Of a DNA stretch of 64,000 nt, positions 21,223 to 64,000 are shown in pieces (positions within the stretch are counted from its first letter, which is position 1; each line of letters begins with the position of its first letter). The position numbers were made by a program, and so were the translations under genes. The DNA is taken from contig CM074804.1 of assembly GCA_037447605.1 (NCBI GenBank), forward strand, positions 6,549,909 to 6,613,908. Reading direction: 5' to 3'. The notes beneath the pieces are model-generated. The model worked only from the letters and a program-made list of their open reading frames with translations, was not told the DNA's origin and did not search any database. Source of the DNA: Zygnema circumcarinatum SAG 698-1b (Eukaryota; Plantae; Zygnematophyceae).

Positions 21223-22117
21223 GCCCTCCGCCTTCCGCCAGCCCTCCCTCCCTCCCTCCCTCCCTCCCTCCCGATCTCCTCCCCACTCCCTCGTCCACTT
21301 CCTCTCCCTTCGCCTTCCTACTACCCGCTACGCCGCACAGTTAGGGTTGCGCCCTGCAAGGACTGCGGCAGCCAGGCCCGGCCCGGACGGTTGCCAGCCA
21401 GCCAGCCACCGGCCAGTCAGCCGGCCGGCGAGATGGATGCCGGCCGGCGAGATGTATGCCGGCCGGCGGGCCGGCGCCTCCAGCGCCACAAGCAAGCACG
21501 AAGGGCGCGACTCGCGAGGCGCAGCGGAGGTGACGGCCGGCAGGCGTGGGTTGACGGCTGGCAGTCGAGGGATGACGGTCGGCAGGTGCGGATGCCGGCC
21601 GGCCGGGCGAGGGCGGGGCGCGGCGGGGCTGGATAGGACACGTGGCCGTGGCAGCGCACTCGGTGCAGGTGCGCCCGCGTTGCATGGCCGCCGGGCGGCG
21701 CTCTCCGTACAGCGGCGGAGGGGCGACGCGGCGCGCGGACGCAGCGAGCGGCCGGCGGTACGAAACGCGTACGAACATACGGAGATAGATACTGGGAGGC
21801 CACAAAATCGGTGGCTGCGGCTGCAGGGTCGGGCGGGAGGGAACGCCGCCCGCCCGGCCGCCGGTACCGGGAGGGCGGCGGCAGGCGGGCGCAGCTGCCT
21901 GGAACCTTCCTCGTCGAGGGGCCCTTGCGACTCGCCGCGGCAATGATGAGGGAGGGGCACCGCGTGCTGACGTCACCCACAGGCTCGCGGAAATACGGCA
22001 AAACTGAAAAGTACCGCACGAACGGCTGGACCGTATGCCAGCATACGTCACCGCACGTCACTGTACCGACAGGCGGCACAGCTGTACGGATTGACTGCTG
22101 GCCGGTACGGAGGGTTT

Positions 22118-22308
22118 CACAGGTCGAACCATTGGATCGGCAACCATTGAACAACCATTGGATGGCAATGGTTGGACGTCTAATGGCTGGCAACTGTTGG
22201 TTGCTAACCATTGGCATCCACTGTTTCCGAACCATTTGAATTGTTGTTTCGACCCAGGGCCAATGATTGGCAACCGGTCGAATGGTTGGTCTAATGGTCC
22301 GAGCTGTG
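22118..22308. mobile_element. 191-bp MITE with CACAG termini and a near-perfect 8-bp target-site duplication
   Basis: Left end CACAGGTCGAACCATTGGA; right end read on the minus strand CACAGCTCGGACCATTAGA. Flanks are GAGGGTTT (22110-22117) and GAGGGTTC (22309-22316). The interior is made of AACCATT/AATGGTT half-sites. Confidence 0.8.
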
Positions 22309-22679
22309 GAGGGTTCCTCGTCGGCCCACAACTCCCGGGCGGGGCGGGCGCGGCAGACGAGCAGCCAGCCCTGCCGGGGCGCCATGCGCGGCCCCGCGCG
22401 CTTTTGCACAGCCCGCCGCCGCCCGCCCGCGGCGGGATCCGCAACTCGCGCGAGTCGTGACTGACGAGTGGCGAGTGGCGGCCGGGCGTGCGTGCGCCGC
22501 CGGCGAGAGGGTGGGGGGATGGTCCGGCCTCCGGTGACGACCGGCCGGGCGAACCCGGCAGACCAACTTTGCACCGGACGGCATGCGCTTGCTCTCACAG
22601 CAGAGGAAGAAAATGGCGTTTGAAAATGGCGGTGGCATTCTCCTAGCTTTTCCTTTTGTTCTTAGGTCCTTGGCGACCA

Positions 22680-22866
22680 GTTCCTCGTGGTTCCCCATGA
22701 TACTTTTTGTGCATGTACATTTGATGGCATCATCGCCATCGTGAGATCAACGCCACATCTCTTCTTTCCGTTTGAACACGCGATGGCGATGCATGCCATC
22801 GAAATGAATGGATGAAATGTACGTGCACGAAAGCCAACAGGGCATGCACGGGGAACCACGAGGAAC
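22680..22866. mobile_element. Foldback/MITE-like element of about 187 bp
   Basis: Perfect 17-bp terminal inverted repeat GTTCCTCGTGGTTCCCC (22680-22696) / GGGGAACCACGAGGAAC (22850-22866). The imperfect complementarity continues inward (GTGCATGTACATTT and GATGGCAT-CATCGCCATCG arms). Confidence 0.7.
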
Positions 22867-23492: not shown

Positions 23493-26400
23493 ATGGGTGC
23501 GCTGGCACTCCCGCAGGCGGCTCTGCCCGCTTGGGGGGTGGCCGCGGGGGGGCGCGGAGGGGTCCTGGTGCGAGGGGGAGGGGCGAGGCAGCAGGTGGCT
23601 GCCCTTAGGGGTGGGCGCAGGCAGTCTGTCGGGATGGCGCGGAGCTTTTCTGCAAGAGCACAGGTCTGGAGGCCTTATTACGTTCTGGTTTTTGGGCGTG
23701 GTTGGGGCCTGGTGACAATTTGAAGGATGCAGAGCTAACTTCATTTTGTGTTTGCGTTTTTTTGTTCGAGTCGGCTTTGCTATGAGCTTGCACTAGCTGC
23801 TTTTCTTCATTGCTATTGTGTTATCATCTCTTTCTGCCGGGGCTCAAAAACGGATGAGTGAAGTGCAAGTTAGGCAATGAAACTCTGTGGCGCTCAGTTT
23901 ACTGGGTAAGCTATAAATGGTAACATTGACTTGAAAGTCTGGCTGACAGTCGTATTGAAGCTCGCACGGTTTTGGAATTTACTGAAGCCTTAATCACAAA
24001 GCGCCGCGTGTTAATGAATGTGCTGTCCTTATTGCCCCTCCGCACCTCAGTTTATGTTTTATCGCTACCAGACAGACATGATTCATTTGGAGATCTTCTA
24101 AGCTCTTCAGGAGTTTATAGGAAGAAAGCAAGTTAGAAGGGAAGCAGCCTTAGGATAGTGGCCCTCGTTGCTGAAGCGGATCTGGCAACGTGTTGCAGGT
24201 GGAGGAGGTGGAGGAAGCAAGGAAGTCATCAGACAGTTCTAGCTCCGCAGCCATCATCACAGACGCCCCTCCTCTGAAGCAAAAATTTAATCTGTTATCC
24301 GAGGCTGGTCCAAGTCGCTATATGGTTGCATCTGGAGAGCAAATTTCGGTAATTTCAGTGAACTATGGGTGAAGATGTTTCTGATCATGTCAATAGAGGC
24401 TACTTACTCAAACTACTGGCACAACTCGCCACTCTAAACCTCTTGCGCTTAGGAATGCCTATGGCTATCAACCTGCATAGACAGTGCATGGTTCAAAACG
24501 GAGGTTCCTTTCCATTGTCAGTCATTTTTGTAAGAAATTTTGATCGAATCTTAATGCTTCGAACAGCTCGGAGACTAATCTTTCTTTTCTATTTCTCATT
24601 CTCTTGGACAAGTTTGAGAACTTAAATGTCGCCTTTTGTGGATTTTTGACTTGATGTTTCAATCCATGGGAATCGTGCAGGTTGCTACAGCAGGAGCACA
24701 GGCTTTCTTGAGGCTCGGCAGTGGAGCATTTGTTTCTCCCAACCTCTCGAAATTCAGAAAGCGTCCCGACAAGCCTTTGGAGTTGTACGAGTTTGAAGGC
24801 TGTCCATTTTGCCGCAAAGTAAATGCCACTGCTTTTAATCTTTTGAGTAGACACATAATTTCGTCAGCTGACGGCATTATTGTTCAAATTATTCGATGCA
24901 ACTGGAATATTTCAGTTGCGTGGACTTTTCGAAGTCCGTTCCAGTTATTCGCTCGTCAGATTTTCCCACAACATTTATTCGGTTTCTCTGGCTTCTACGG
25001 TTGTAGATAGGCCTTGTTGGGTACTTACCGTTTTTGTATCATATTTTTCCTTCCTTTTCCCCACCGTCCTTCATAACCACTCACGCCTCTTATACTGCGG
25101 CCCCTCTGTGCTGGCAAAGATCAGAGGAGCGGGCTAAGATAATGATGTTGTCGTATGTGCGCTTTTGACAGGTGAGGGAAGCAGTAACTATTCTGGACTT
25201 GGACGCAATCTTTTACCCCTGTCCTGCAAATGGACCCACTTGGCGTCCAAAAGCCATCCAGCTTTCGGGCAAACGGCAATTTCCGTTCCTTGTGGATCCC
25301 AATAACGGAATCTCTATGCTGGAATCGGATGACATTATTGCCTACCTTTGGAACGAATATGGAGATGGGAAGGTTCGTGCTTCAGCGTTTCACCAACAGA
25401 CCAATTGAAACAATTGAAGGAACTGGTTTACTACGCCCTATCTGCATCAATTCCCCCCCCTCGATCCCTCTCTCCATCTCCCCTCTCCCTCCCTCTCCCC
25501 CTCCCCCTCCCCCACCCCCTCCCCCTCCCCCTCCCCCTCCCCCTCCCCCTCCCCCCTCCCCCTCCCCCTCCCCCTCCCCCTCCCCCTCCCCCTCCCCTCC
25601 CCCTCCCCCTCCCCCTCCCCCTCCCCCTCCCCCTCCCCCTCCCCCTCCCCCTCCCCCTCCCCCTCCCCCTCCCCCTCCCCCTCCCCCTCCCCCTCCCCCT
25701 CCCCCTCCCCTCCCCCTCCCCCTCCCCCCCCCTCCCCCTCCCCCTCCCCCTCCCCCCTCCCCCTCCCCTCCCCCTCCCCCTCCCCCTCCCCCTCCCCCTC
25801 CCCCTCCCCCTCCCCCTCCCCTCCCCTCCCCCTCCCCCTCCCCTCCCCCTCCCCCTCCCCCCCCCTCCCCCTCCCCCTCCCCCTCCCCCTCCCCCTCCCC
25901 TCCCCCTCCCCCTCCCCCTCCCCCTCCCCCCACCCTCTCTCTTGCATATTGCTTTGAAATCTGAATTTCAGTCAACCTCGTAAGAAGGATTGCAGATTGT
26001 AGCACTTTTGACGGCGCAGCCTCACGCTATTTCCTGCTAAAGCTTAAATTTTACTTAAGTACTTGGAAGAACGAATGTTCACTCGATACTAGAATTGTTG
26101 GACGTTGCCTTCGCTCTGAATAGCATGCCCTTTCCTATTTACAGTATGTTTTCTGGTTTGACAGGAAAACATACCGTTCCAGTTCAATCTGGGCCCGTTC
26201 ACCACCCTCTCTGCAGGCCTTGCGTTGGCACCACGTTTTGGCCGTGGTAGCCAATATCGCAAGTCTCGCCTACCGGAGAAACCAATTAGCCTGTGGGCAT
26301 ATGAAGCCTCCCCATTCTGCAAGTTGGTGAGGGAGGTGCTGAACGAGCTCGAGTTACCACATTTGTACATTTCTGTAGCAAGGAATAGTCCCAAACGGCC

Positions 26401-41900: not shown

Positions 41901-44900
41901 AGAACCTCTAGCGTTGTGTTCTGCTTTATTCCAAATACATTTCAAAGACTAAACTCAGACCTACATGCTCAATCGGGAGGTTTTCAACAGCGACTTCAGC
42001 TGAGTACGTCAGAACTTGTCTACCTCATGACAAGATACTAAGAGGATTACGGCAGAAAACACAGCTAAACCATGGATATTCCCCTCCGACCTGCTGTGCA
42101 CTCTCGCCTTCAAGGTGCTTGGACAGATTCTACAGATATTGCGAGCCTTACACCTGCAGAACCTTATACCTGCTGGAACTACCTTTACAACGGATCTTTA
42201 GATACAAGTAAAATCGCTCTCGTTTTCAAACGGCGGAACGAAATTTTTCACTAGACACACCCCTTCAGTCCGCCCCATTCCCTGTCCCTGTCCTATGCTC
42301 ATCTCCCTCATTCACTTCATCGTCAGCCCATCCACCTACATTTCCAATTTCCTCCACCTTCCCACTCTCTCATTTATCCCATTCACTTCCATTCAATAAA
42401 CCTCTGCGTACTTCAACCAATCAACCATCCCAATCTGTCCCACTCTCCCACTTCCTCCCTCTCCCCACCCTCAGAGCTGCGAGCAAAAGACAGGACATAC
42501 GTTCACCTTGCCACCTTAAACCTGAGAAACGCGTAAGGCCGATTTACCAACTTCCGAATGACATCCTATTAACTATCACAATTTTGGTGCATGGGGATGC
42601 GATCGCGAACACGAAAGGCTTCTTGCATTCCCCATGAAACCTTTTGATGGCGTCGCCATCGTGAGATCATGAGCGGTTAGAAGGATCAGCTAGCTACATT
42701 TGGTGTTGAGGGCAAGTTAATCGAACATAAGCAACGAGGTATCACATAAGCTCCAATGTGGTTGCTGCCTCCATTCAAAAGGGAACCACTATGTCTTTCT
42801 CCCCACGCTGCCTGAATCTCCCAAGTTCTGCCAGCTTAGGAAGGACATCATTTCCATGAAGCACAGTTATGGAGAGGTTGCCTGGATAAGCCCAAAGCTC
42901 TCACGCAGAATGGGGGTTCCACTTACTACCCTAAGCATTCTTCTGTAAACAAAGAGCCGTGACTCACCAACGCTCCAGCTTTGCGCGCCATTCTCTTCGC
43001 TCTCATGTCAACATTCTCCACGTATACCTTCCGTTCCGTTCCATTTCTTATCGCTTGCTGGCGCCTCAACTTCTGGTATGGAGCTGCTGCTCGCAAGGTT
43101 GCGTCCACAGCAAGCCTTTTCACCGGGCCCTGAACAATGGAGTCGAAAATTGATTGGATACTTCTTCAAAAATAAAGAATAAGAAATGGAATGTGGACTA
43201 GAGCAGATATTATGTTCAATATTCTAAGTGCTGAAGATAATAAGCGAAGGAGGTTGATTGTATCAAAGCAGAAAATACCTTTGGAAACATGGGCTTAATG
43301 TATCGCCCCCGATCTTCAGAAAATATAACATTTTTGGCTCGCCCAGCTTTGCCCTTTGAGCGCTGCGCTTGCTGCGCAAACATGAGCAGCTGGGCGTCCA
43401 TCATGCCACCCTCAGCGTCGAAAACAAACTCTTCAGGGATCTGGTCTGCCTGCTGTTCCACATCTTCCTCGTCATCTTCCTGAACACAAAAACCTGTCGC
43501 ATTAGATGGACGTGTTGAACCAAACACACGCTACTCTCTGAACAGTAAAAGAAAGATCCTATTTTTGTGCGACTAAGAAAAGAAAGAAAGTCAGAAATAG
43601 GTAAATGGTACAATACTCATATCTGATCCCCTTACTGAAGGACAATAACTTGCATCAGACAAACAAGTGACTCATTCCACTGCGATAGCTAGTGGAGACT
43701 AACCACTACCCTATCTTATGGATTCCTCAAAAACAACGATACTACCACTATTTTGTTGAATGAGTCGAACATTTCACCTTGTCTTCCTCCTGTTCATCTT
43801 CTTGTTCATCATCGTTGTTCTGATCCTGGGCTTGAGGTGGTGGTGGGGGTGGTGGCTGCTGTTGTTGCTGATCATTCGGCATTTCGATGACAGTTGCTCT
43901 TGGAACAATCACCAACTCCACCTGCACAAAATTCTCCAAATGCAATTGTGTAAAGGAATGATACAAGCAAATTACAACCAACAGTTTGACTTGTAAGGAT
44001 TAGAAAAATAAACGCAGCACTTACAGCTTTCCTCAAATCATCTGCGCTGACTCTTTCACGTCCCTCAAGTGCTGCTGAAGCTTTTGCAACACGCACAGCA
44101 TATAATTCTGCTCTGTGTCCCTGCATCCCAGACAGCTTGCAAAGTCTGCTTGCATAAAGGAATTACAATACATTCATGGTTAACCTCAGCAACTAAACAT
44201 TATACAGAGAGGAAAAATCAAATCGCATCATTGCAAGTTCATGCAACTTAGCTCTGATGCACATTCACTTGTAGAACCATCGTAAGGGTCACAAAGAGTA
44301 TCTGTTAAGTGAGTTCAAGGATGAAGAATTTACGTCAAAGTTTGCTTCAAGTTACCTGGCACTGGCCTCGAATCGCCTCTGTCACCAAGTATTTCATCTG
44401 TTCCCTACTAATTTTCACATCCTTTAACCATTCTCGAGCAAGTATAACCTGCAGTGTAACCGCACAAAGGTCATCACCACCTGTCAGCATACATAGAGAA
44501 ACCGAATGAAGTGAAGACTTTAGCAGGGAATTTTTCTGAGGGCGGCAAGTAAACAACAGTTTCTGAGCACGATGGATCTCCTCTGGATATGCTGGCTATG
44601 GGACGATCTAATAGAATTGTAAGGTCACCTGCCATCTTCAGCTAAGTACGTTTGCTTGGCTTGAGCCCCAGAATTGCGCTTTACTCACAAGAGCTCAGGA
44701 ACTTCTGGGATTTGCTTAAAGATACCAGATTTGTACCTGTGTCCTTGCTGTTTCTGTAGCTTCCTTCGAATCTTGAAGAACGTCCGTAGCAGAGTTCTGA
44801 AATCGAGTGGCTATATCCACTGCCGCAACTCTATCGTCAAAGTCAGGTACAACATCAGCACTGCACAGCAAAACAGCTCACCAAAAAATAAAAACGTAAG

Positions 44901-47492: not shown

Positions 47493-47781
47493 TCCGTCCG
47501 TACGTCCGTCCGCCCGCCCGTCCGTCCGTCCGTCCGTACGTCCGTCCGCCCGCCCGTCCGTCCGTCCGTCCGTACGTCCGTCCGCCCGCCCGTCCGTCCG
47601 TCCGTCCGTGCGTCCGTCCGCCCGCCCGTCCGTCTGTGCGTCCGTCCGTCCGTCCGTCCGTCCGTCCGTCCGTCCGTCCGTCCATCCGTCCGTCCGTCCA
47701 TCCGTCCGTCCGTCCGTCCGTGCGTCCGTCCGTCCGTGCGTCCGTCTGTCTGTCCGTCCGGTCCGTATGTCCGTACGTCCG
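47493..47781. repeat. (CCGT)n/(GACG)n compound microsatellite in the CHLD promoter island
   Basis: About 290 bp of ccgt tetramers, with a higher-order 36-bp period (..ccgtacgtccgtccgcccgcccgtccgtccgtccgt..) at its start. Confidence 0.92.
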
Positions 47782-51200: not shown

Positions 51201-54200
51201 TTGGATCGTAGAGTTTTCTGCTGCTAACGAATTTTCTTAAAAGCCTGGCGGAGCTTTGCTCACGAATACTCTTTGCTACTACGCATAATACCGAACTCCC
51301 GTCAAACTCGTAAAAAGTAAAAATACATGGCCACCATTTGTGTGAGCGATTGCACGTTATTGGTGTTCTCTTGAAAAGGATTTTATTCTACGGTTAGAAA
51401 GAACTCAGGGTCAGAAGCCACCTTATGCCGAATAGTCCAGAGAGAGGGAAAGATAGCAGCCAGGTTGGATCCCACAAGAACAAAGATATGCTTGTTCGCT
51501 TCTGCGATCGAATCAATCAAGACCCTTTGGGTGAGCGTATGATGCTCAAACCATCCTATGAAAGGAGTTCTGTGCATGTTCTGACTACATTTGTGACACA
51601 GATTGTACATCAAACACGTCACAGCAAGAGTACAACTTGGAAATAAGAATGGCGCAGAACATACCCTTAGGGGACACGAGTTCAACAGAGCAGTTCGTGC
51701 CTCCGTGCGAGCGATCACAGTAGCAGTACCTGCATTCTCACCTTAATCTGTGAGGAAGCATTCATGGCATAATAATCCAACTGTGTTCATTACAAAACTG
51801 TAAGATTCGGATCCCTTGGTAACTCACACGCTTGGACTCCTTTCAGCCAACCAAATTCAGAAAGCCTTACATGCATAGGATTCTCACAATGAAGCAACTT
51901 ACCCAACTGAATGCAGGCGACTTCCATCCACAAGCATATGGCAGCCTCCATGGCCATTACAGGCATTGGGGCAACCATGCATAAGCACACGAACCTCGAC
52001 AGACATTTCCTCCTCCGATGAAGAAACTGTATAAGATGAGCCTCTAGAATGTGACCTTCCATGCAGTTTTGTTCCCCGTGATATTCTGTCACTTAATAAT
52101 GTCGAGTCTTGGACGCTTTTCTCCGACGCAGGTTGATAGGAGGGTGCATTGTCAATCCCAGGGCTAGGACCTCCAGAAAAATAATTAAGTGAGTTAGCAT
52201 CCGTCAATTCAACACGACCATCTTGCAATGTGTCACCGTTGACTGCATCAACAATCGAACCACGAAGTCCTATATACCAAGTCCCTCTTGCCGGATAATA
52301 GATATCCAAAGTTACACTTCCATCCCCACCGAGCCTTAAGATCTTTCCTCCCATAGACTCCAAATTCTCAAATTCCTCCCCACTCTCAAATCTCCTATCT
52401 TGGTGTGCAGAAAAACCTGCATGAAAACTTTCTGCAAAAGGCAAGGGGCCCACAGTACGACTCCTTAAAATCTCAGGCTCGGTCCATATGTCGGCATCAC
52501 CATTACTGGGAACGCCTCCCAACTTTCCCAAAATTTCCAGTTTCCAGATTCCAGATTCTCCCAGTTTCGCTCCCTCGTTGCTATTGAATTTTGTTGTAGT
52601 TTCTGTGCTTTCCTCATCATGCCGCAACTGGCTTGTCCCTGTTCCATTCCTCCTTTCTCTTGAGGGACGTTCAGTCTCTTGGTCGCCAAAATGTGGTGCA
52701 AGCTTTACATCAATAGTCAATATTGATCCTGATGCACCGGATGGCACCACAAGGGAAAAGTATCCCCAAAACTCTGATGCTTTCTGAAATAGACCACTTT
52801 TTCTACTTTCCTCAGTTTTCCCCAAGTTAGGCTCTACTGGCATTCCGGCCTCCCATTTCCCGTGGTTTTTGAGCCGTTCCGCAATCGAAGGATCCCCCCC
52901 ATCAGGAGGAAAGCTTTTCTTTACTTTGCTCCCAGGGGCAGCGATTTTCCTGGCTTTACCTTGAAGGGGCAGACCAAGGGTGAGGGGAAACCAAGCATTG
53001 CCCATCCAAGAAGGACTTGGAATGTCAGCAGGTAGGTAGGTTGCATCCAGGACAGATTCAGGCTGCCATTCAGGGATTGATCTCTGCAATAAAAGTGACA
53101 GCACGATTAATTGCCAGCTCCAAAAGTTTGTTTCAGCCCCCACGTGCACTCGACAAAGGAACGGAAGACAAAAGGGATTTAAGGAGACATGACAGTGACA
53201 AAGTGGACTTTCTATTCCGTTTACAGACATCATGGAGCATACCAATCCATTTCTCGGAACTTCAACAAAATTACATCCAACTGGATGCAATGAGAGAAGC
53301 GCATCTAAACAGTGGCTTCTCATGGAAGCATGAACTCATTCTCCAAGTGGTCAACGAACTGTATATACTGTACTTGAACTTCCCAGATCAAGTGTAAAGT
53401 TTACTTGCTGAGGAAACGACATGCAAGTGAATGATTGTACAAAAAATATATGAATTAAAAGGGGAGCAAGCAGTTCACAAACTAAGGCATGACCTCGCTT
53501 GCAAAATATATAGAGGCAGAATTTTTGGCTACATCCATTTCCCAGGGCCGACTTTGTGCCTGTTGCATCCTAACGCTTCTACTTCGTGCTTACAATCCAA
53601 TTGAAACTTGTCCAGAATGCTGCAGGGAGTAGGAGTGGTCCACATACTCATCCACTTCATTGTACATCAACATGTCAACATATCATGGCCCCATGGACTA
53701 AAATGTGTCCGTCCATGTGAGTGATCGGGTGTTCACGAGATTAAGGCTTTTGATGGTATCGATCCAGGGATAGAAAATGGAAGCAGCGGCACATGGGGGG
53801 GTGTGGTATGAAACAAACCTCCAGGGTCAAGACACTCCATCCACAATCGAAACTGCCTCTTCCCGGTGGGCACATGCGAACTTTCCATCGGAGGGTGAAG
53901 CAGTGCCCCTGCCCACTTGCTCCATAAGCACGCATATGCTCCGACCGGTTCTTTTTCTGTGACAAGGTCTCCAAGTCCGGGACAGTCATATACCAGATGC
54001 CAAGTTCAGGAAGAATCACGGGAGGAAGAATCGTTTCTTCTATTGCAGTAGGCACTGAGCTGCGCTTCAAATACACAGTGCCCGTCTTAAATGCAGGCGG
54101 ACTATGGCTGTCTGTGATATCATCATCTCCTGAACTCGGTAAAGCTTCGTCGAATTTCAATAAGGTTACTTGTTCTTCTGCCCCGCGATCTCTCTCAGGC

Positions 54201-56520
54201 TCACCTTCGGATTCAAGCATTCCAAGCGACTCACGAGGAGTTCTGCGAAGTTGTTCTGGGTAATCAAAACCTACTTGCCGAAGACTAGCCCCTCGTGAAT
54301 TTGCTGGGTCACTCATGGGGGGCAGATTAGACCCGGGTTTCTCTTCCGTAATGTCTACGCTGACAACATTGGGAGAATCGAACCTGTTCTTGTCACTCAA
54401 GTCCTCAAGGACCTGAACGTCAAGCTCAGCTGCAAGTCCACGTATCTCCAGCTGATAGTACTTGGACTCTTCAAATTGTCCAAAACATTGACTTCTCAAG
54501 TACTGCCACTCCTCAGAGGCACCATCATCGCTGACCGACCCAAGACTCTCTGCAGCAATTTCTTCATGGCGGACTGTTCTGTCAAATTTCAAACTCCCAT
54601 CACGAGCTATTTGCTGATTCAACCCAAAGTTGAGCTGTTCAGAGGCAGACAGGTAGGCTGCCTTTGTAGCAGGATCTTCAGCAGCAGGACCTGAACCACC
54701 AACATGTGATGGCGAAGGTGATTCTGTTGGCATTTCTGACTGGGAGGGTGAATTGAACGATAGGGGCGACGGAGCTGGCCCAGGGGCTATGGGTTTTGAA
54801 GGAGGCGGCGAAAGTGGAGGATTGGGCGAGGAAGGTGTTGATGGTGGGAACGGTGGGGGAAGTGGAGTGATGAGACAGTTGCAATTGGGGCAGAGGATGA
54901 GTCCTCCTCCTGAACAACTGTAGGTTGCGACATGGAGTTCAAAATGGTAGACAGAACCACGAGGTATCTGCAAAGGTGAAGGATATCTGAATGAGGAATC
55001 TGCTCGAGCATACCACACAATGAACAAAGATAGGCTATGATCGCTGTGCATTGAACAAACACGAAAGGCTTTTACTTTCTTGCTGTTTCCCATGCTTCCC
55101 AAAAATCACACAGAAAGGTTATCTGCTTTTAACCGTGTGCCAACGCTACGTGCTTCACACTTTACTGCAGACTCTTGACCTTCATGTTCAAAGACATCTG
55201 TCTAAGTTTGCAAGGATGAGGTTTATCACATTCAGGTACCATCTGGGACTGAGTCCTGCTATCATTCGTGATGCTGAAGAAGCCCAGCTCCCAAAGTCCA
55301 GGCAAGTCCTGCGCCAAACACAGTCTAATAAATGAATTAATTTCCTTCCCTGCATCCTCAAAGAGAAAGTTCGAGCAACCGCTACAAAGAACCTCCATTT
55401 GTATTGCAGGTGGATAACAACACGCCCTAATCTCTGATAGTCGTCTTTCATCCAAAAGATCTTTCATCATATTCAATAGCATAAAACGCTCTCCACAAGA
55501 AGCATTTGACAGGTCGGCGCTACCATATCTCTCACTCTCCCATCCCATGCAATCGGCTGTCGCTACACTCTTTACAACTTGCAAAAAAAGGGTTCAACTG
55601 GGGCATAATGGTTCAACCTCTCACGTATACACTGAAAATGTACGAGAATCAAGTGAAGTTTCAGTTCACCTTATCAAAAACAAACAAACTCACAAATCAC
55701 TTGCAAACCAAAATCACCTCGACTCATTGATATACGAATGCCCTCCACAGAGCCTTACTCCCAAACAACATCGACAGAGCTTTTTAGTTTACCAGCAGAA
55801 CAGGTAATAATTCACCATTGTGATGGGATGTTCCAGGGAAACTGCATACGCCTCCCTCACGGACTTAGGTAAGTGTAAGGACCCTTCTACCGTAAGCATC
55901 ACTAATTTTCCTTCACGTATGAAATACGGCAGGTTCATGGAAAAACTAGAGGACACGAACCTATCCTCACAGTACTTGCATGATGGGCTTCCGTTTGTGA
56001 CCAAAATAATCGCGGAATTTGCAATCGTGACGGATACCTCTCTTTGGATGCACCATTGGCCTCTTTAGGGCTTTCATTGATTAAAAATAGTTGCCCAGTT
56101 TCTGATGGGAATGCTTGAAACACACATCCGGACACTGATCGTCTCAAATGCGGTCGGCACAGGATTCTGGATTCTAGATCAGATTCCTTTCCTACAATCA
56201 CATTTCCCAGTCATCAAGCAATTGAACGGGAAAGCTACATGGGATTTTAAAGTTCCAATATAGTCTCCCTGTCTAGCAATCACCTGATCACTCGTGACAT
56301 TGACGCTTATGCCTTCGTCGAACCAAGCACAAGCTCCACTTGCATCTTGAGTTGGCCGACGTTGAGCTGCCTCATTTGCGGCGGTGCCAACTGAGTCGAG
56401 GATGGAGGCTGATGCGATCGAACAAGGAGCAAAAGCATGAAACAGAAACAGGCGAATACTCCTAAGCAAGTCTGAAATATATGGTGAAGCATGCTTTTGC
56501 TGGTTCATTGGTCCAACCAT
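48236..56520 (-). CDS. TMEM8/PGAP6-like (DUF3522) multi-pass membrane protein with an EGF-like domain, spliced; start uncertain
   Basis: GCPNACNGHGGC..|YCYCDRSHGGTNCSVELVS (EGF-like), then VGSNLAAIFP, AYAEWVIYTTSGVSSAIYHSCD, LQ|FADFFLSFMAVVATFLF and YWIWH|SLWHVSIYSSAYLFLC, the CREST-superfamily S-x3-H..D..H-x3-H pattern. N-terminal PGLWELGFF..RTQSQM segment. Confidence 0.85.
49705..49756. repeat. (CAGTTT)n microsatellite, intronic
   Basis: About 8-9 hexamer copies. Confidence 0.9.
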
Positions 56521-58871: not shown

Positions 58872-60990
58872 CTCTTTTTCGTCACTAGGACAAGGATAGT
58901 ATTACCCTTACTGCCTTGGAGATTTTTTTCTTTTTTTGGGTTAGTGACTATCAGACTTTGAGACACTGGTGGTTGGAACCCTTGATGCTGAGGCGCCCTC
59001 ACTTCTGAAAGTCATGAGTAGTGGAAACGGAAGTCGGACTTGCAAGCCGGAGGCCTGCAACATCCAATCGTGCTTGAGGCGTAACTCATTCAAGACGGAA
59101 AGGTGATCCTTCCGCTGGCAAATGCAGCAGAGCTTTGTTTTTCTGAGCTCAGAAACTGCAGTTGAGGCAGGGGTCTACCTGCTTGGCCGCCCCTTTCCTG
59201 GTCTTCTTTTAATGTAGTCTATGTTTTTTTAAATTGTTGCTAGTACTGTGGGCCAGGCAGGGAGCTTTGTGCTCCATCGGCCTTTTCGATGTCTGTCTGT
59301 GCGCGTTGAATAAGATTAGCTGGAAACCGAAGGAGGGTTTCTCTGTTGGGTTCTATGTCTGAGAGTGGAAGAGCTGCCTTTAATCTGGGGATACTATCTA
59401 TCATAATGCTTTGCACATGATCTTTGAGTTGTTAAGAAGCGAAAAGGAATTCAAGATTGGAAGGTTTCGGTGTTATATTCACGCAAGCCTTAAGCCCATA
59501 ATATGCACGGCCTTCACAGCCGCCTTTTGATGGATTGCGGTGTGGCAGGTGCTTGGAAGCCATTGTGAAGCTGAAAACGTGTTGTGATCAGATTGAGGGG
59601 AAATCCGATCATTGCACATCCTTTGGCGCCCTCATAGAGCAAGCAACAAATACGAAAATAGAAGAGGCTGGATGAAGCTTTCAATCAGTCTTTTGGGACA
59701 ACAATCAGTCTTTTGGGACAACGAGATTCTTGTGCTTGCAATCGCTCAGTTTTTAATGCCATGTGCGGGAGTTGGAGCTGAATTGTCAGTTGCAGTTTGT
59801 ACTTTCTACGAAGCTGGTGCCGTGGCAGTGGCAGGGTATAGCTTGTAATATATCTGACTTACGGACCTTCAAAAACAATTTCAGTGCCTTTCATGTTACA
59901 TCCAATACTGTTTTCCTTTTGAACTTTTTATGTTTGTTTTTCTGTAACCGTGGTGCCGCTGTAGTATCGAGCTATCTGGCTGTTGCTGTAATTTGTCACA
60001 CAGCAGAGAACCTGCTGCAGTCTCCAATACAACAGTAATACTTCACACGGGCTACGTTCTCACGTTTGTGAATTGATGAAAAGAGTACAGGCAAAGTGCC
60101 ACCAAGGCAATTTCTTTGCAAGAACCGGGCATGCCGAGGTTTTGCCTTCGCCTGGAGAGTGCACGATTGCGTCCATTGCTGGCCCTTCACACCCATTGTC
60201 CGTTGTCCACTATTCTGTCCGTGGCAATATATTGTGCATGTCAACGGCCCTGCTCACTGCCCACCTTGTTGAACTTTTGCATATCTTCAGTTCTGCTGGG
60301 TTCAGTCAGGATTACAGGTTTTTATCGACCTTCTATGTGTTGTCTTCATGACCTTGACGTTGATGTCGATCCATTCAGTAGAGCGCTCCCTTGGCCAAAA
60401 CTAGACTAGTCACTCCTTCGGCTGTGGTATTGCCGCATGTCAGAAAATTGCCAGCTTTTTCGCGAGTCAAAGGCCAGTGTTCATCGAGCAGTTGCACCGT
60501 TCCCTTGCACGGGAAGGGTTGAAGCAGGCCTTTTCATGGTGATGTAGAAAACCTGCATCCAATCGTTGAGAACACAAATATGAACGTCTGTCAGGAGGCT
60601 GCGTTACGAGTGCGTGAAAGAAATGTCAGAAAAAAATTGACTAGCAGCTTCGCAAGGTTGGTTCAAAGTGTTTTCCAGATGGCGTTGGAAAAGTTTTCGA
60701 ACAGGCACGCCGACTGGCTGTTGTTGTGACCGTGCCGTTCAGCTGAGGGCCTCGTGCAGTGTCTCCAATACAACAGCAACACTTGACACGGCCTACATTC
60801 GTTCACCTTCGTAAACTGACGCCATTGCTTCACGACTACACATTCAGGCGACGCTCACAGGCGAAGTGCTGCCAACACAGTCTGAAAGCCAGGCGAGCTC
60901 GAGACGTCTGTCTTGAGAGTGGGGGTACTATTTCTCGAGCTCCAATACCCATTGTCCACTGTACTCTACCCTGTCCAGTACACAACACTG

Positions 60991-63842
60991 CACAGATCGG
61001 ACCACTAGACAAACCAGTCGACTGGTTGGCAACCAGTGGTTGCGGACCGAAACAACCATTCGACTGGTTGCCAACCAGTGGCATCCACTGGTTCCAAACC
61101 AGTCGACTGGTTGCCAACCAGTGCCGCCGGATCGAAACAACCATTCGACTGGTTGCCAACCAGTGCCGCCGGATCGAAACAACCATTCGACTGGTTGCGA
61201 ACCAGTGGCGCAGGACTGAAACAACCATTCGACTGGTTCGGAACCAGTGATCCAATGGTTGGCAACCATTGAATTTCTGAAATTAAAACAAATTGCAAAA
61301 ATGGGTCGTATGTGTTTTTTGGTGGGTTGCCAACCGTTGACAACTAGTGTAACAAGCCTGATGCGTACAGATGCGTACGGATTCGTACAGCCGAGTCGTA
61401 CGGTTGTACGGATATTATGTACGGCCGAACCGTAATAGTTTTCTCCGAAACGCCGACGACATTTTGGTAGCTGTAGCGTTCAGTTCGCTACAACTAGTGA
61501 TTTAATGGTTGCCAACATTTAATGGTTTCCACATTTTGCCTTTATCCATGTAAATTTGATGGCCTCGCCATCGCGAGTTCAATGAAAGTTTGCGTGTTGC
61601 CAACCATTTGATTTAATGGATATAACCATTCGACTGGTTGCCAACCAGTGGCATCCACTGGTTCCAAACCAGTCGACTGGTTGCCAACCAGTGAATGCCA
61701 CTGGTTGGCAACCAGTCGACTGGTTGCCAACCAGTGGCATCCACTGGTTCCAAACCAGTCGACTGGTTGCCAACCAGTGGCATCCACTGGTTCCAAACCA
61801 GTCGACTGGTTGCCAACCAGTGGCATCCACTGGTTCCAAACCAGTCGACTGGTTGCCAACCAGTGGCATCCACTGGTTCCAAACCAGTCGACTGGTTGCC
61901 AACCAGTGGCATCCACTGGTTCCAAACCAGTCGACTGGTTGCCAACCAGTGGCATCCACTGGTTCCAAACCAGTCGACTGGTTGCCAACCAGTGGCATCC
62001 ACTGGTTCCAAACCAGTCGACTGGTTGCCAACCAGTGGCATCCACTGGTTCCAAACCAGTCGACTGGTTGCCAACCAGTGGCATCCACTGGTTCCAAACC
62101 AGTCGACTGGTTGCCAACCAGTGGCATCCACTGGTTCCAAACCAGTCGACTGGTTGCCAACCAGTGGCATCCACTGGTTCCAAACCAGTCGACTGGTTGC
62201 CAACCAGTGGCATCCACTGGTTCCAAACCAGTCGACTGGTTGCCAACCAGTGGCATCCACTGGTTCCAAACCAGTCGACTGGTTGCCAACCAGTGGCATC
62301 CACTGGTTCCAAACCAGTCGACTGGTTGCCAACCAGTGGCATCCACTGGTTCCAAACCAGTCGACTGGTTGCCAACCAGTGGCATCCACTGGTTCCAAAC
62401 CAGTCGACTGGTTGCCAACCAGTGGCATCCACTGGTTCCAAACCAGTCGACTGGTTGCCAACCAGTGGCATCCACTGGTTCCAAACCAGTCGACTGGTTG
62501 CCAACCAGTGGCATCCACTGGTTCCAAACCAGTCGACTGGTTGCCAACCAGTGGCATCCACTGGTTCCAAACCAGTCGACTGGTTGCCAACCAGTGGCAT
62601 CCACTGGTTCCAAACCAGTCGACTGGTTGCCAACCAGTGGCATCCACTGGTTCCAAACCAGTCGACTGGTTGCCAACCAGTGGCATCCACTGGTTCCAAA
62701 CCAGTCGACTGGTTGCCAACCAGTGGCATCCACTGGTTCCAAACCAGTCGACTGGTTGCCAACCAGTGGCATCCACTGGTTCCAAACCAGTCGACTGGTT
62801 GCCAACCAGTGGCATCCACTGGTTCCAAACCAGTCGACTGGTTGCCAACCAGTGGCATCCACTGGTTCCAAACCAGTCGACTGGTTGCCAACCAGTGGCA
62901 TCCACTGGTTCCAAACCAGTCGACTGGTTGCCAACCAGTGGCATCCACTGGTTCCAAACCAGTCGACTGGTTGCCAACCAGTGGCATCCACTGGTTCCAA
63001 ACCAGTCGACTGGTTGCCAACCAGTGGCATCCACTGGTTCCAAACCAGTCGACTGGTTGCCAACCAGTGGCATCCACTGGTTCCAAACCAGTCGACTGGT
63101 TGCCAACCAGTGGCATCCACTGGTTCCAAACCAGTCGACTGGTTGCCAACCAGTGGCATCCACTGGTTCCAAACCAGTCGACTGGTTGCCAACCAGTGGC
63201 ATCCACTGGTTCCAAACCAGTCGACTGGTTGCCAACCAGTGGCATCCACTGGTTCCAAACCAGTCGACTGGTTGCCAACCAGTGGCATCCACTGGTTCCA
63301 AACCAGTCGACTGGTTGCCAACCAGTGGCATCCACTGGTTCCAAACCAGTCGACTGGTTGCCAACCAGTGGCATCCACTGGTTCCAAACCAGTCGACTGG
63401 TTGCCAACCAGTGGCATCCACTGGTTCCAAACCAGTCGACTGGTTGCCAACCAGTGGCATCCACTGGTTCCAAACCAGTCGACTGGTTGCCAACCAGTGG
63501 CATCCACTGGTTCCAAACCAGTCGACTGGTTGCCAACCAGTGGCATCCACTGGTTCCAAACCAGTCGACTGGTTGCCAACCAGTGGCATCCACTGGTTCC
63601 AAACCAGTCGACTGGTTGCCAACCAGTGGCATCCACTGGTTCCAAACCAGTCGACTGGTTGCCAACCAGTGGCATCCACTGGTTCCAAACCAGTCGACTG
63701 GTTGCCAACCAGTGGCATCCACTGGTTCCAAACCAGTCGACTGGTTGCCAACCAGTGGCATCCACTGGTTCCAAACCAGTCGACTGGTTGCCAACCAGTG
63801 GCATCCACTGGTTCCAAACCAGTCGACTGGTTGCCAACCAGT
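60991..63842. mobile_element. Large non-coding TIR-type element related to the 22118-22308 MITE, with subterminal repeats and an internal satellite; right end not firmly defined
   Basis: It starts CACAGATCGGACCACTAGACAAACCAGTCGACTGGTTG, colinear with the MITE right end CACAGCTCGGACCATTAGACCAACCATTCGACCGGTTG. Six 27-bp cores at a 42-43-bp period follow (61012-61249). Confidence 0.65.
61710..63842. repeat. 43-bp tandem satellite, 49 perfect copies plus a partial copy
   Basis: Unit AACCAGTCGACTGGTTGCCAACCAGTGGCATCCACTGGTTCCA. Phase is preserved from 61710 to 63816 (49 x 43), with a 26-bp partial copy to 63842. Two variant units precede it (61624-61709). Confidence 0.97.
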
Positions 63843-64000
63843 CTCTGCCCAAAACCTGACTGTACACTACAACACTACATTGAGTTGTAAAACCTACTAA
63901 GATCGGAGTTCCAAGAAGGCCCATTTCCCGAAATCAGAGCGCTAGAAACACACGACAGAAGAAGCCTTGTCGTGCCCGTTCTGTTTTACGTGACAAGAGC

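Follow-up and report, generated by a model that had tools for sequence, protein, structure and literature searches.

In this study, we have analysed a stretch of 64,000 nucleotides from Zygnema circumcarinatum SAG 698-1b (assembly GCA_037447605.1, contig CM074804.1, positions 6,549,909 to 6,613,908), hereafter termed the window, which contains a 43-bp tandem array preceded by the terminus and the repetitive arm of a transposon-like element. The segment between positions 60991 and 63842, referred to as the 61-kb copy, is in our judgement probably a rearranged and presumably immobile copy of a non-coding family of cut-and-paste DNA transposons of the foldback type. As judged from its sequence, this family combines CACAG termini and a target duplication of 8 bp with arms that consist of arrays of 42- and 43-bp units instead of unique sequence, and it is represented by a second, complete member at 22 kb. 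We regard the assignment of the left end to the family, the order of its units and the origin of the array monomer as established at the level of the nucleotide sequence, and the same degree of certainty applies to the non-coding nature of the 61-kb copy and to the absence of a right terminus. The proposal that the array grew in place from a unit of the family arm is well supported, since the array begins with an exact repetition of 70 nt from the left arm.

Arm, array and a complete family member

The left end of the 61-kb copy begins with the CACAG of the family terminus (60991-60995, plus strand), and this terminus is identical in 18 of 20 positions to the end found at 22289-22308. It is followed by a left arm of six units, which are each composed of a 27-bp core and a linker, with the linkers measuring 15, 16, 15, 15 and 15 nt. 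The core harbours three half-sites of 7 nt, either AACCAGT or AACCATT, in alternating orientation, and a fourth half-site is found only in the second linker, which generates a 43-bp unit among units of 42 bp. The CACAG at 60991, the six cores and their linkers had been correctly placed by a first-pass annotation of this DNA. An exact run of 54 nt at a lag of 42 (61103-61156) shows that the left arm has itself duplicated one unit recently. The half-sites are mostly of the form AACCAGT in the arms of the 61-kb copy and AACCATT throughout the 191-bp copy at 22 kb, and this uniformity within each copy fits a repeated turnover of units. When folded as a single strand, the left arm reaches z = -7.8 relative to shuffled sequences.

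The array itself is delineated by Tandem Repeats Finder at 61624-63842, with a period of 43, 51.6 copies, 99% matches and a score of 4387. Its 2219 bp can be parsed in register into 51 full units followed by 26 nt. Within each 43-bp unit, which corresponds to about four helical turns, the half-sites start at positions 1, 10, 20 and 34, and three such units folded as single-stranded DNA yield -48.8 kcal/mol (z = -11 compared to shuffles). The first unit of the array differs by one base and the second by seven, all located in the linker of the latter, and the following 49 units do not contain a single difference over 2107 bp. Arrays that grow from within usually show variant edges combined with identical inner units, and since the 49 units are identical, this growth is either very recent or homogenisation is continuing. 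The long homogeneous head-to-tail arrangement is that of a satellite, yet the array is short for a classical one.

The origin of the monomer is illustrated by a comparison of the array with the left arm. The monomer, whose linker is of the second type, is found once in the arm as an exact stretch, as part of a segment (61054-61123) that is identical to 61624-61693 over its 70 nt and in direct orientation. The amplification of the second-linker unit that had been recognised in the first-pass annotation is thus borne out by 49 consecutive perfect copies.

The features of the family are equally apparent in the complete member at 22 kb, a miniature inverted-repeat transposable element (MITE) whose coordinates are listed together with those of the 61-kb copy in Table 1. 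A pattern describing the terminus identifies three ends in the window, at 60991 (plus), 22118 (plus) and 22308 (minus), and no further match with up to three mismatches elsewhere in the window. The MITE is flanked by a target duplication with seven of eight matching positions, which abuts both ends without positional freedom and would be found by chance in about 4 in 10,000 cases. Its similarity to the 61-kb element, which had been suspected from the outset, is significant, with 60984-61120 matching 22315-22184 at E = 3e-19 in a search the size of the window. The order of components is common to both copies, with the terminus being followed by a 42-type unit whose linker ends in GAAAC and subsequently by the unit with the 16-nt linker and the fourth half-site. 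Since the MITE is an old and diverged copy and nevertheless has a matching terminus and unit order, the alternation of 42 and 43 bp is an old feature of the family that is not new in the 61-kb copy, in agreement with an 85-bp periodicity of the left arm. The initial description of a satellite being born from one subterminal repeat is therefore accurate in deriving the array from the second-linker unit, but the choice of this unit is not a one-off, as it constitutes the normal second unit in both copies. The underlying idea of a non-autonomous transposon family with expanding palindromic arrays has stood up well, with a unit order that is common to the MITE and a monomer that stems from the arm.

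We propose that the 43-bp unit with its four half-sites, which is normally the second in the arm, was amplified in place on the element's right side to about 51 head-to-tail copies. The multiplication of one unit probably proceeded by replication slippage or by unequal sister-chromatid exchange, both of which would be favoured by the strong potential of the unit to form hairpins or cruciforms. A loss of the right end would have removed any cost of array growth for mobility, and the array might then have been able to act as a small satellite. The half-sites are probably binding sites of the putative transposase of the family, since in the Drosophila transposon Galileo the tandem repeats inside the terminal repeats carry secondary binding sites for the THAP domain of the transposase (PMC3688188).

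Table 1. Coordinates of features of the 61-kb copy and of the complete family member at 22 kb (positions in the window)
Feature	Position	Strand	Description
Candidate left target-site duplication	60983..60990	+	CAACACTG; 8 nt directly before the terminus; weak support
Left terminus	60991..61011	+	Starts with CACAG; 0 mismatches to the pattern built from the 60991 end and the 22289-22308 end
Left arm	61012..61249	+	Six units of 42, 43, 42, 42, 42 and 27 nt
Source-like segment	61054..61123	+	Unit 2 (43-bp type) and core of unit 3; same sequence as the initial 70 nt of the array
Non-coding central region	61250..61623	.	374 bp; degenerate AATGGTT-N3-AACCATT dyads, GTAC-rich 140 nt and GATGGC hairpin motif
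Array edge units 1 and 2	61624..61709	+	Unit 1 identical with the second unit of the left arm; array unit 2 is a linker variant of inverted type
Identical array units 3-51	61710..63816	+	49 consecutive identical 43-bp units, each with four alternately oriented AACCAGT half-sites
Last partial array unit	63817..63842	+	26 nt; array ends mid-unit
Right junction	63843..63869	+	No recognisable family terminus
Candidate right target-site duplication	63870..63877	+	CAACACTA; 7/8 to the left 8-mer
Complete 191-bp family member (MITE)	22118..22308	-	Inverted CACAG termini; minus strand collinear with the left arm of the 61-kb copy
MITE target-site duplication, left copy	22110..22117	.	GAGGGTTT
MITE target-site duplication, right copy	22309..22316		GAGGGTTC

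The right junction and competing explanations

When 61250-61640 and 63800-64000 were aligned with the three known termini, no score was clearly higher than those of shuffled sequences, and none of the better-scoring matches at the right junction or in the central region includes the CTGTG end. These alignments agree with the first-pass annotation, which had found no clear terminal inverted repeat on the right side. Since the canonical right terminus is either lost or unrecognisable, the 61-kb copy can probably no longer move. We thus treat it as one-ended, and it may either have lost its right end or be a recombinant resembling the chimeric copies of Galileo, which occur without matching duplications (PMC3573991).

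As an alternative, the segment 60991-63869 could constitute an intact and mobile foldback element with a very long right arm, a diverged right terminus and a true duplication of the sequence CAACACT(G/A), which we consider unlikely. This proposal is based on the 8-mer CAACACTA found 27 nt past the array, the only match of at least 7/8 to the 8-mer in front of the left terminus within 3 kb downstream, and the probability of such a match lying no more than 40 nt from the end of the array is about 0.02 according to the window-wide rate. It is also consistent with the segment 63843-63864, which contains a CTGTA and weakly resembles, in collinear order, the terminus that would be expected. However, the known termini score no better than shuffles at this junction, and a gap of 5 nt separates the candidate duplication from the nearest CTGTA. 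Moreover, the flanks are rich in words resembling ACACT, and their wider similarity, as expected for a longer flanking duplication, is not significant (75 of 500 shuffles). The 8-bp target duplication suggested in the first-pass annotation thus has a sole partner whose proximity is statistically unusual, but its displacement and the lack of a significant wider similarity of the flanks leave it weakly supported. The right flank at 63865-63880 is itself a tandem pair of 8 nt with seven identical positions, which could reflect low-complexity sequence or an old excision footprint.

A second alternative is that the array would largely be a product of the assembly, in which the assembler or polisher either expanded or homogenised a short run of units, or in which the repeat led to a fusion of two loci. 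The assembly of palindromic tandem repeats is difficult, and the lack of any difference in 49 units would be expected from such a process. In contrast, the array has specific junctions on both sides, with variant units forming its left edge and the right edge falling within a unit, and the sequence does not carry any mark of a join, which makes a predominant contribution of the assembly very unlikely.

We find it highly improbable that the direction of events was reversed, with a satellite of AACCAGT palindromes residing first in the host and the transposon family capturing pieces of it or inserting beside it. The diverged MITE at 22 kb already contains units right behind its terminus in unchanged order, which identifies these units as an old and integral part of the mobile element, whereas the array, with no differences among its 49 units, is the youngest sequence of the region. 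Finally, a regulatory or structural array of the host under selection, serving for example as a platform for a dimeric DNA-binding protein, would account for the regular spacing of half-sites in units of about four helical turns but is scarcely credible, as its units are those of a mobile element that possesses termini and a target duplication, as the pattern of the core finds no match in metagenome, prokaryote-genome and viral contigs, and as perfect identity points to recent growth and not to long conservation.

The interpretation as a rearranged foldback-type copy has to be weighed against several observations. Judged by its spacers, the array is oriented directly and not inverted with respect to the left arm, with an exact match of 70 nt compared to 27 nt for the best inverted match, and such direct orientation is not predicted for the right arm of a simple foldback element. 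Despite this orientation, the arm and the array are still 82% complementary because the units are quasi-palindromic. In the absence of a right terminus, the assignment of the entire segment to one element relies on a single end, the copy number of the array depends on the assembly, and the identity of the 49 units could in part reflect assembly or polishing. The features of the family were read from two copies, at 61 and 22 kb, which both reside in the same 64-kb window.

Central region and surrounding sequence

The central region between the left arm and the array does not contain an open reading frame (ORF) of any size apart from those derived from the repeats. Its GTAC-rich part of 140 nt (61350-61489) is flanked on both sides by an exact direct repeat of 10 nt and lacks inverted ends; the surrounding block at 61340-61499 holds six CGTAC or GTACGG words. 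Clusters of GTAC are found at only two places in the window, at 22011 and 61365. When aligned to 21960-22117, the block at 61 kb scores no better than shuffles, of which 114 of 500 were as good, and the resemblance between both blocks is thus confined to the level of motifs. One short match to 21.7 kb that was reached in 1 of 500 shuffles consists of no more than a pair of CGTACG words. We have consequently rejected the GTAC block as a module shared between the two loci.

The GATGGC...GCCATC hairpin of about 45 nt is of a different nature. It is found in four copies, at 61541-61582, 22706-22750, 22772-22816 (inverted) and 42632-42672, whose similarity is not reached in any of 500 shuffles. At 22680-22866, two inverted copies of the hairpin together with outer inverted repeats of 20 nt form a MITE-like inverted-repeat structure of 187 bp. 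Since this structure is independent of the MITE of the CACAG family, from which it is separated by 370 bp, the hairpin constitutes a separate small repeat family, and its presence in the 61-kb copy would reflect either an insertion or a part of a longer variant of the CACAG family. Two of the three hairpin loci are located within 600 bp of, or inside, a copy of the CACAG family.

These results do not support the view of a modular element with three kinds of components that are shared between both loci, which had been put forward in the first-pass annotation. The similarity in the array units and the hairpin repeat are both real, but the GTAC blocks cannot be aligned, and the MITE at 22 kb, which is delimited by its own termini and target duplication, includes neither the GTAC cluster nor the hairpin. 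The palindrome array is thus the only component that is shared as part of the element. In 21979-22117, the GTAC cluster opens with a terminus-like word, CACAGGCTCG, which is located 139 nt upstream of the MITE. Neither a partner end nor a duplication matches this word, and it may have occurred by chance.

A search of 65 ORFs of the window against Pfam did not reveal a transposase domain, and the only domains detected were kinase, RING, U-box, HPP, DJ-1, GST and DUF688. No Rfam family was matched in the block of the 61-kb copy. Six ORFs with lengths of 730-780 amino acids traverse the array and are artefacts, since both strands of the 43-bp unit are free of stop codons and its length is not divisible by three. 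In its general character, the window is eukaryotic, with microsatellites and exon-sized ORFs that encode plant-type protein kinase and other domains, and no part of it resembles human DNA. The microsatellites include 77 copies of CCCCTC at 25480-25935, 72 copies of TCCG at 47493-47781 and several runs of the GAGGGA type around 23.4 and 47.2 kb. Two adjacent ORFs of 474 and 453 amino acids on the minus strand (51899-55102), the second of which has a proline-rich stretch, do not match any Pfam family and probably represent exons of a single large gene that is specific to the lineage.

Relation to known transposons and satellites

The described features place the family close to foldback-type elements. 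Arms of tandem sub-repeats without coding capacity are found in both copies, in the form of the 42- and 43-bp units. Inverted termini at both ends are present in the 191-bp copy, and the 61-kb copy contains the left one only, and in the latter the right arm is not an inverted copy of the left. A relationship to Helitrons or Helentrons, which have no inverted termini and no target duplication and carry 5'-TC and 3'-CTRR ends, is ruled out by the inverted CACAG termini and the duplication. The 8-bp duplication of the MITE fits the hAT or the P superfamily. Duplications of the same length are also produced by Novosib and Zisupton. With its 8 bp, the duplication of the MITE, the one clean copy, coincides with the lower limit of the 8-10 bp described for Tetris, with the Mutator/Foldback group showing 9-11 bp. 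The duplication of 7-8 bp and the repeats resembling binding sites that characterise the P superfamily are both found here, as a resemblance only. The sequence CACAG at all three ends does not conform to the terminal motif YARNG of hAT elements (PMC3014272), as its third base is a C and not a purine.

Subterminal repeats that bind the transposase are well known from hAT and CACTA elements, where they are exemplified by the AAACGG hexamers of Ac and the 12-bp TNPA motifs of En/Spm. As in these elements, many short motifs in both orientations are found just inside the termini of the CACAG family, which also shares the 8-bp duplication with hAT elements. In contrast, the motifs described here are strictly phased in units of 42 and 43 bp and form perfect palindromes. 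To our knowledge, a run-away of an array to such size is absent from classical descriptions of hAT and CACTA elements.

A parallel to the long arms is provided by Galileo, a foldback-like member of the P superfamily, whose terminal repeats are long and internally repetitive with repeat numbers that are unequal between both ends, and in which the copy number of the tandem repeats changes (PMC3573991). Galileo differs from the CACAG family in its duplication of 7 bp, in the size of its repeats of about 210 bp and in its known transposase gene; the half-sites described here are presumed binding sites.

It is decidedly unlikely that the enzyme that moves the family belongs to a transposase lineage that is undescribed for streptophyte algae and uses dense arrays of the AACCAGT dyads as landing platform, and that the run-away of units is a general route to satellites in this genome; if true, the run-away growth of single units would make the new satellites of the genome, possibly including structural ones. 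The value of the locus lies in its completeness, with the parent unit, the edge units and the perfectly homogeneous core being all visible within one stretch of 3 kb, and such snapshots are barely documented in algae close to land plants.

The closest known case is Tetris of Drosophila virilis, a non-autonomous foldback element that contains the TIR-220 satellite, in which internal units of the terminal repeats form expanded arrays with a maximum of 66 copies, and whose authors have proposed that transposition is disrupted by arrays of large size (Dias et al., 2014; PMC4079207). Like the family described here, Tetris is a non-autonomous element of the foldback type without a known transposase, and its arm repeats have given rise to long homogeneous arrays, with up to 66 copies compared to about 51 in the 61-kb copy. 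The likeness extends to a short MITE with common termini, with DAIBAM, which shares the termini of Tetris (PMC4079207), corresponding to the 191-bp copy at 22 kb. Differences concern the unit, which in Tetris measures about 220 bp and here comprises 43 bp in the form of a chain of palindromes, the duplication, with 8-10 bp compared to 8 bp, and the host, which in our case is a plant-like alga with a single array known from its sequence alone. The first-pass annotation had regarded the locus as its best candidate for an undescribed system, but the growth of arm repeats into satellite-like arrays accompanied by a loss of mobility is known from Tetris (PMC4079207). The transition from a transposon repeat to a satellite array is thus an already known process, to which the locus adds a new example without posing a new question by itself, and our case supports the published view that elements of the foldback type are especially prone to seed satellites.

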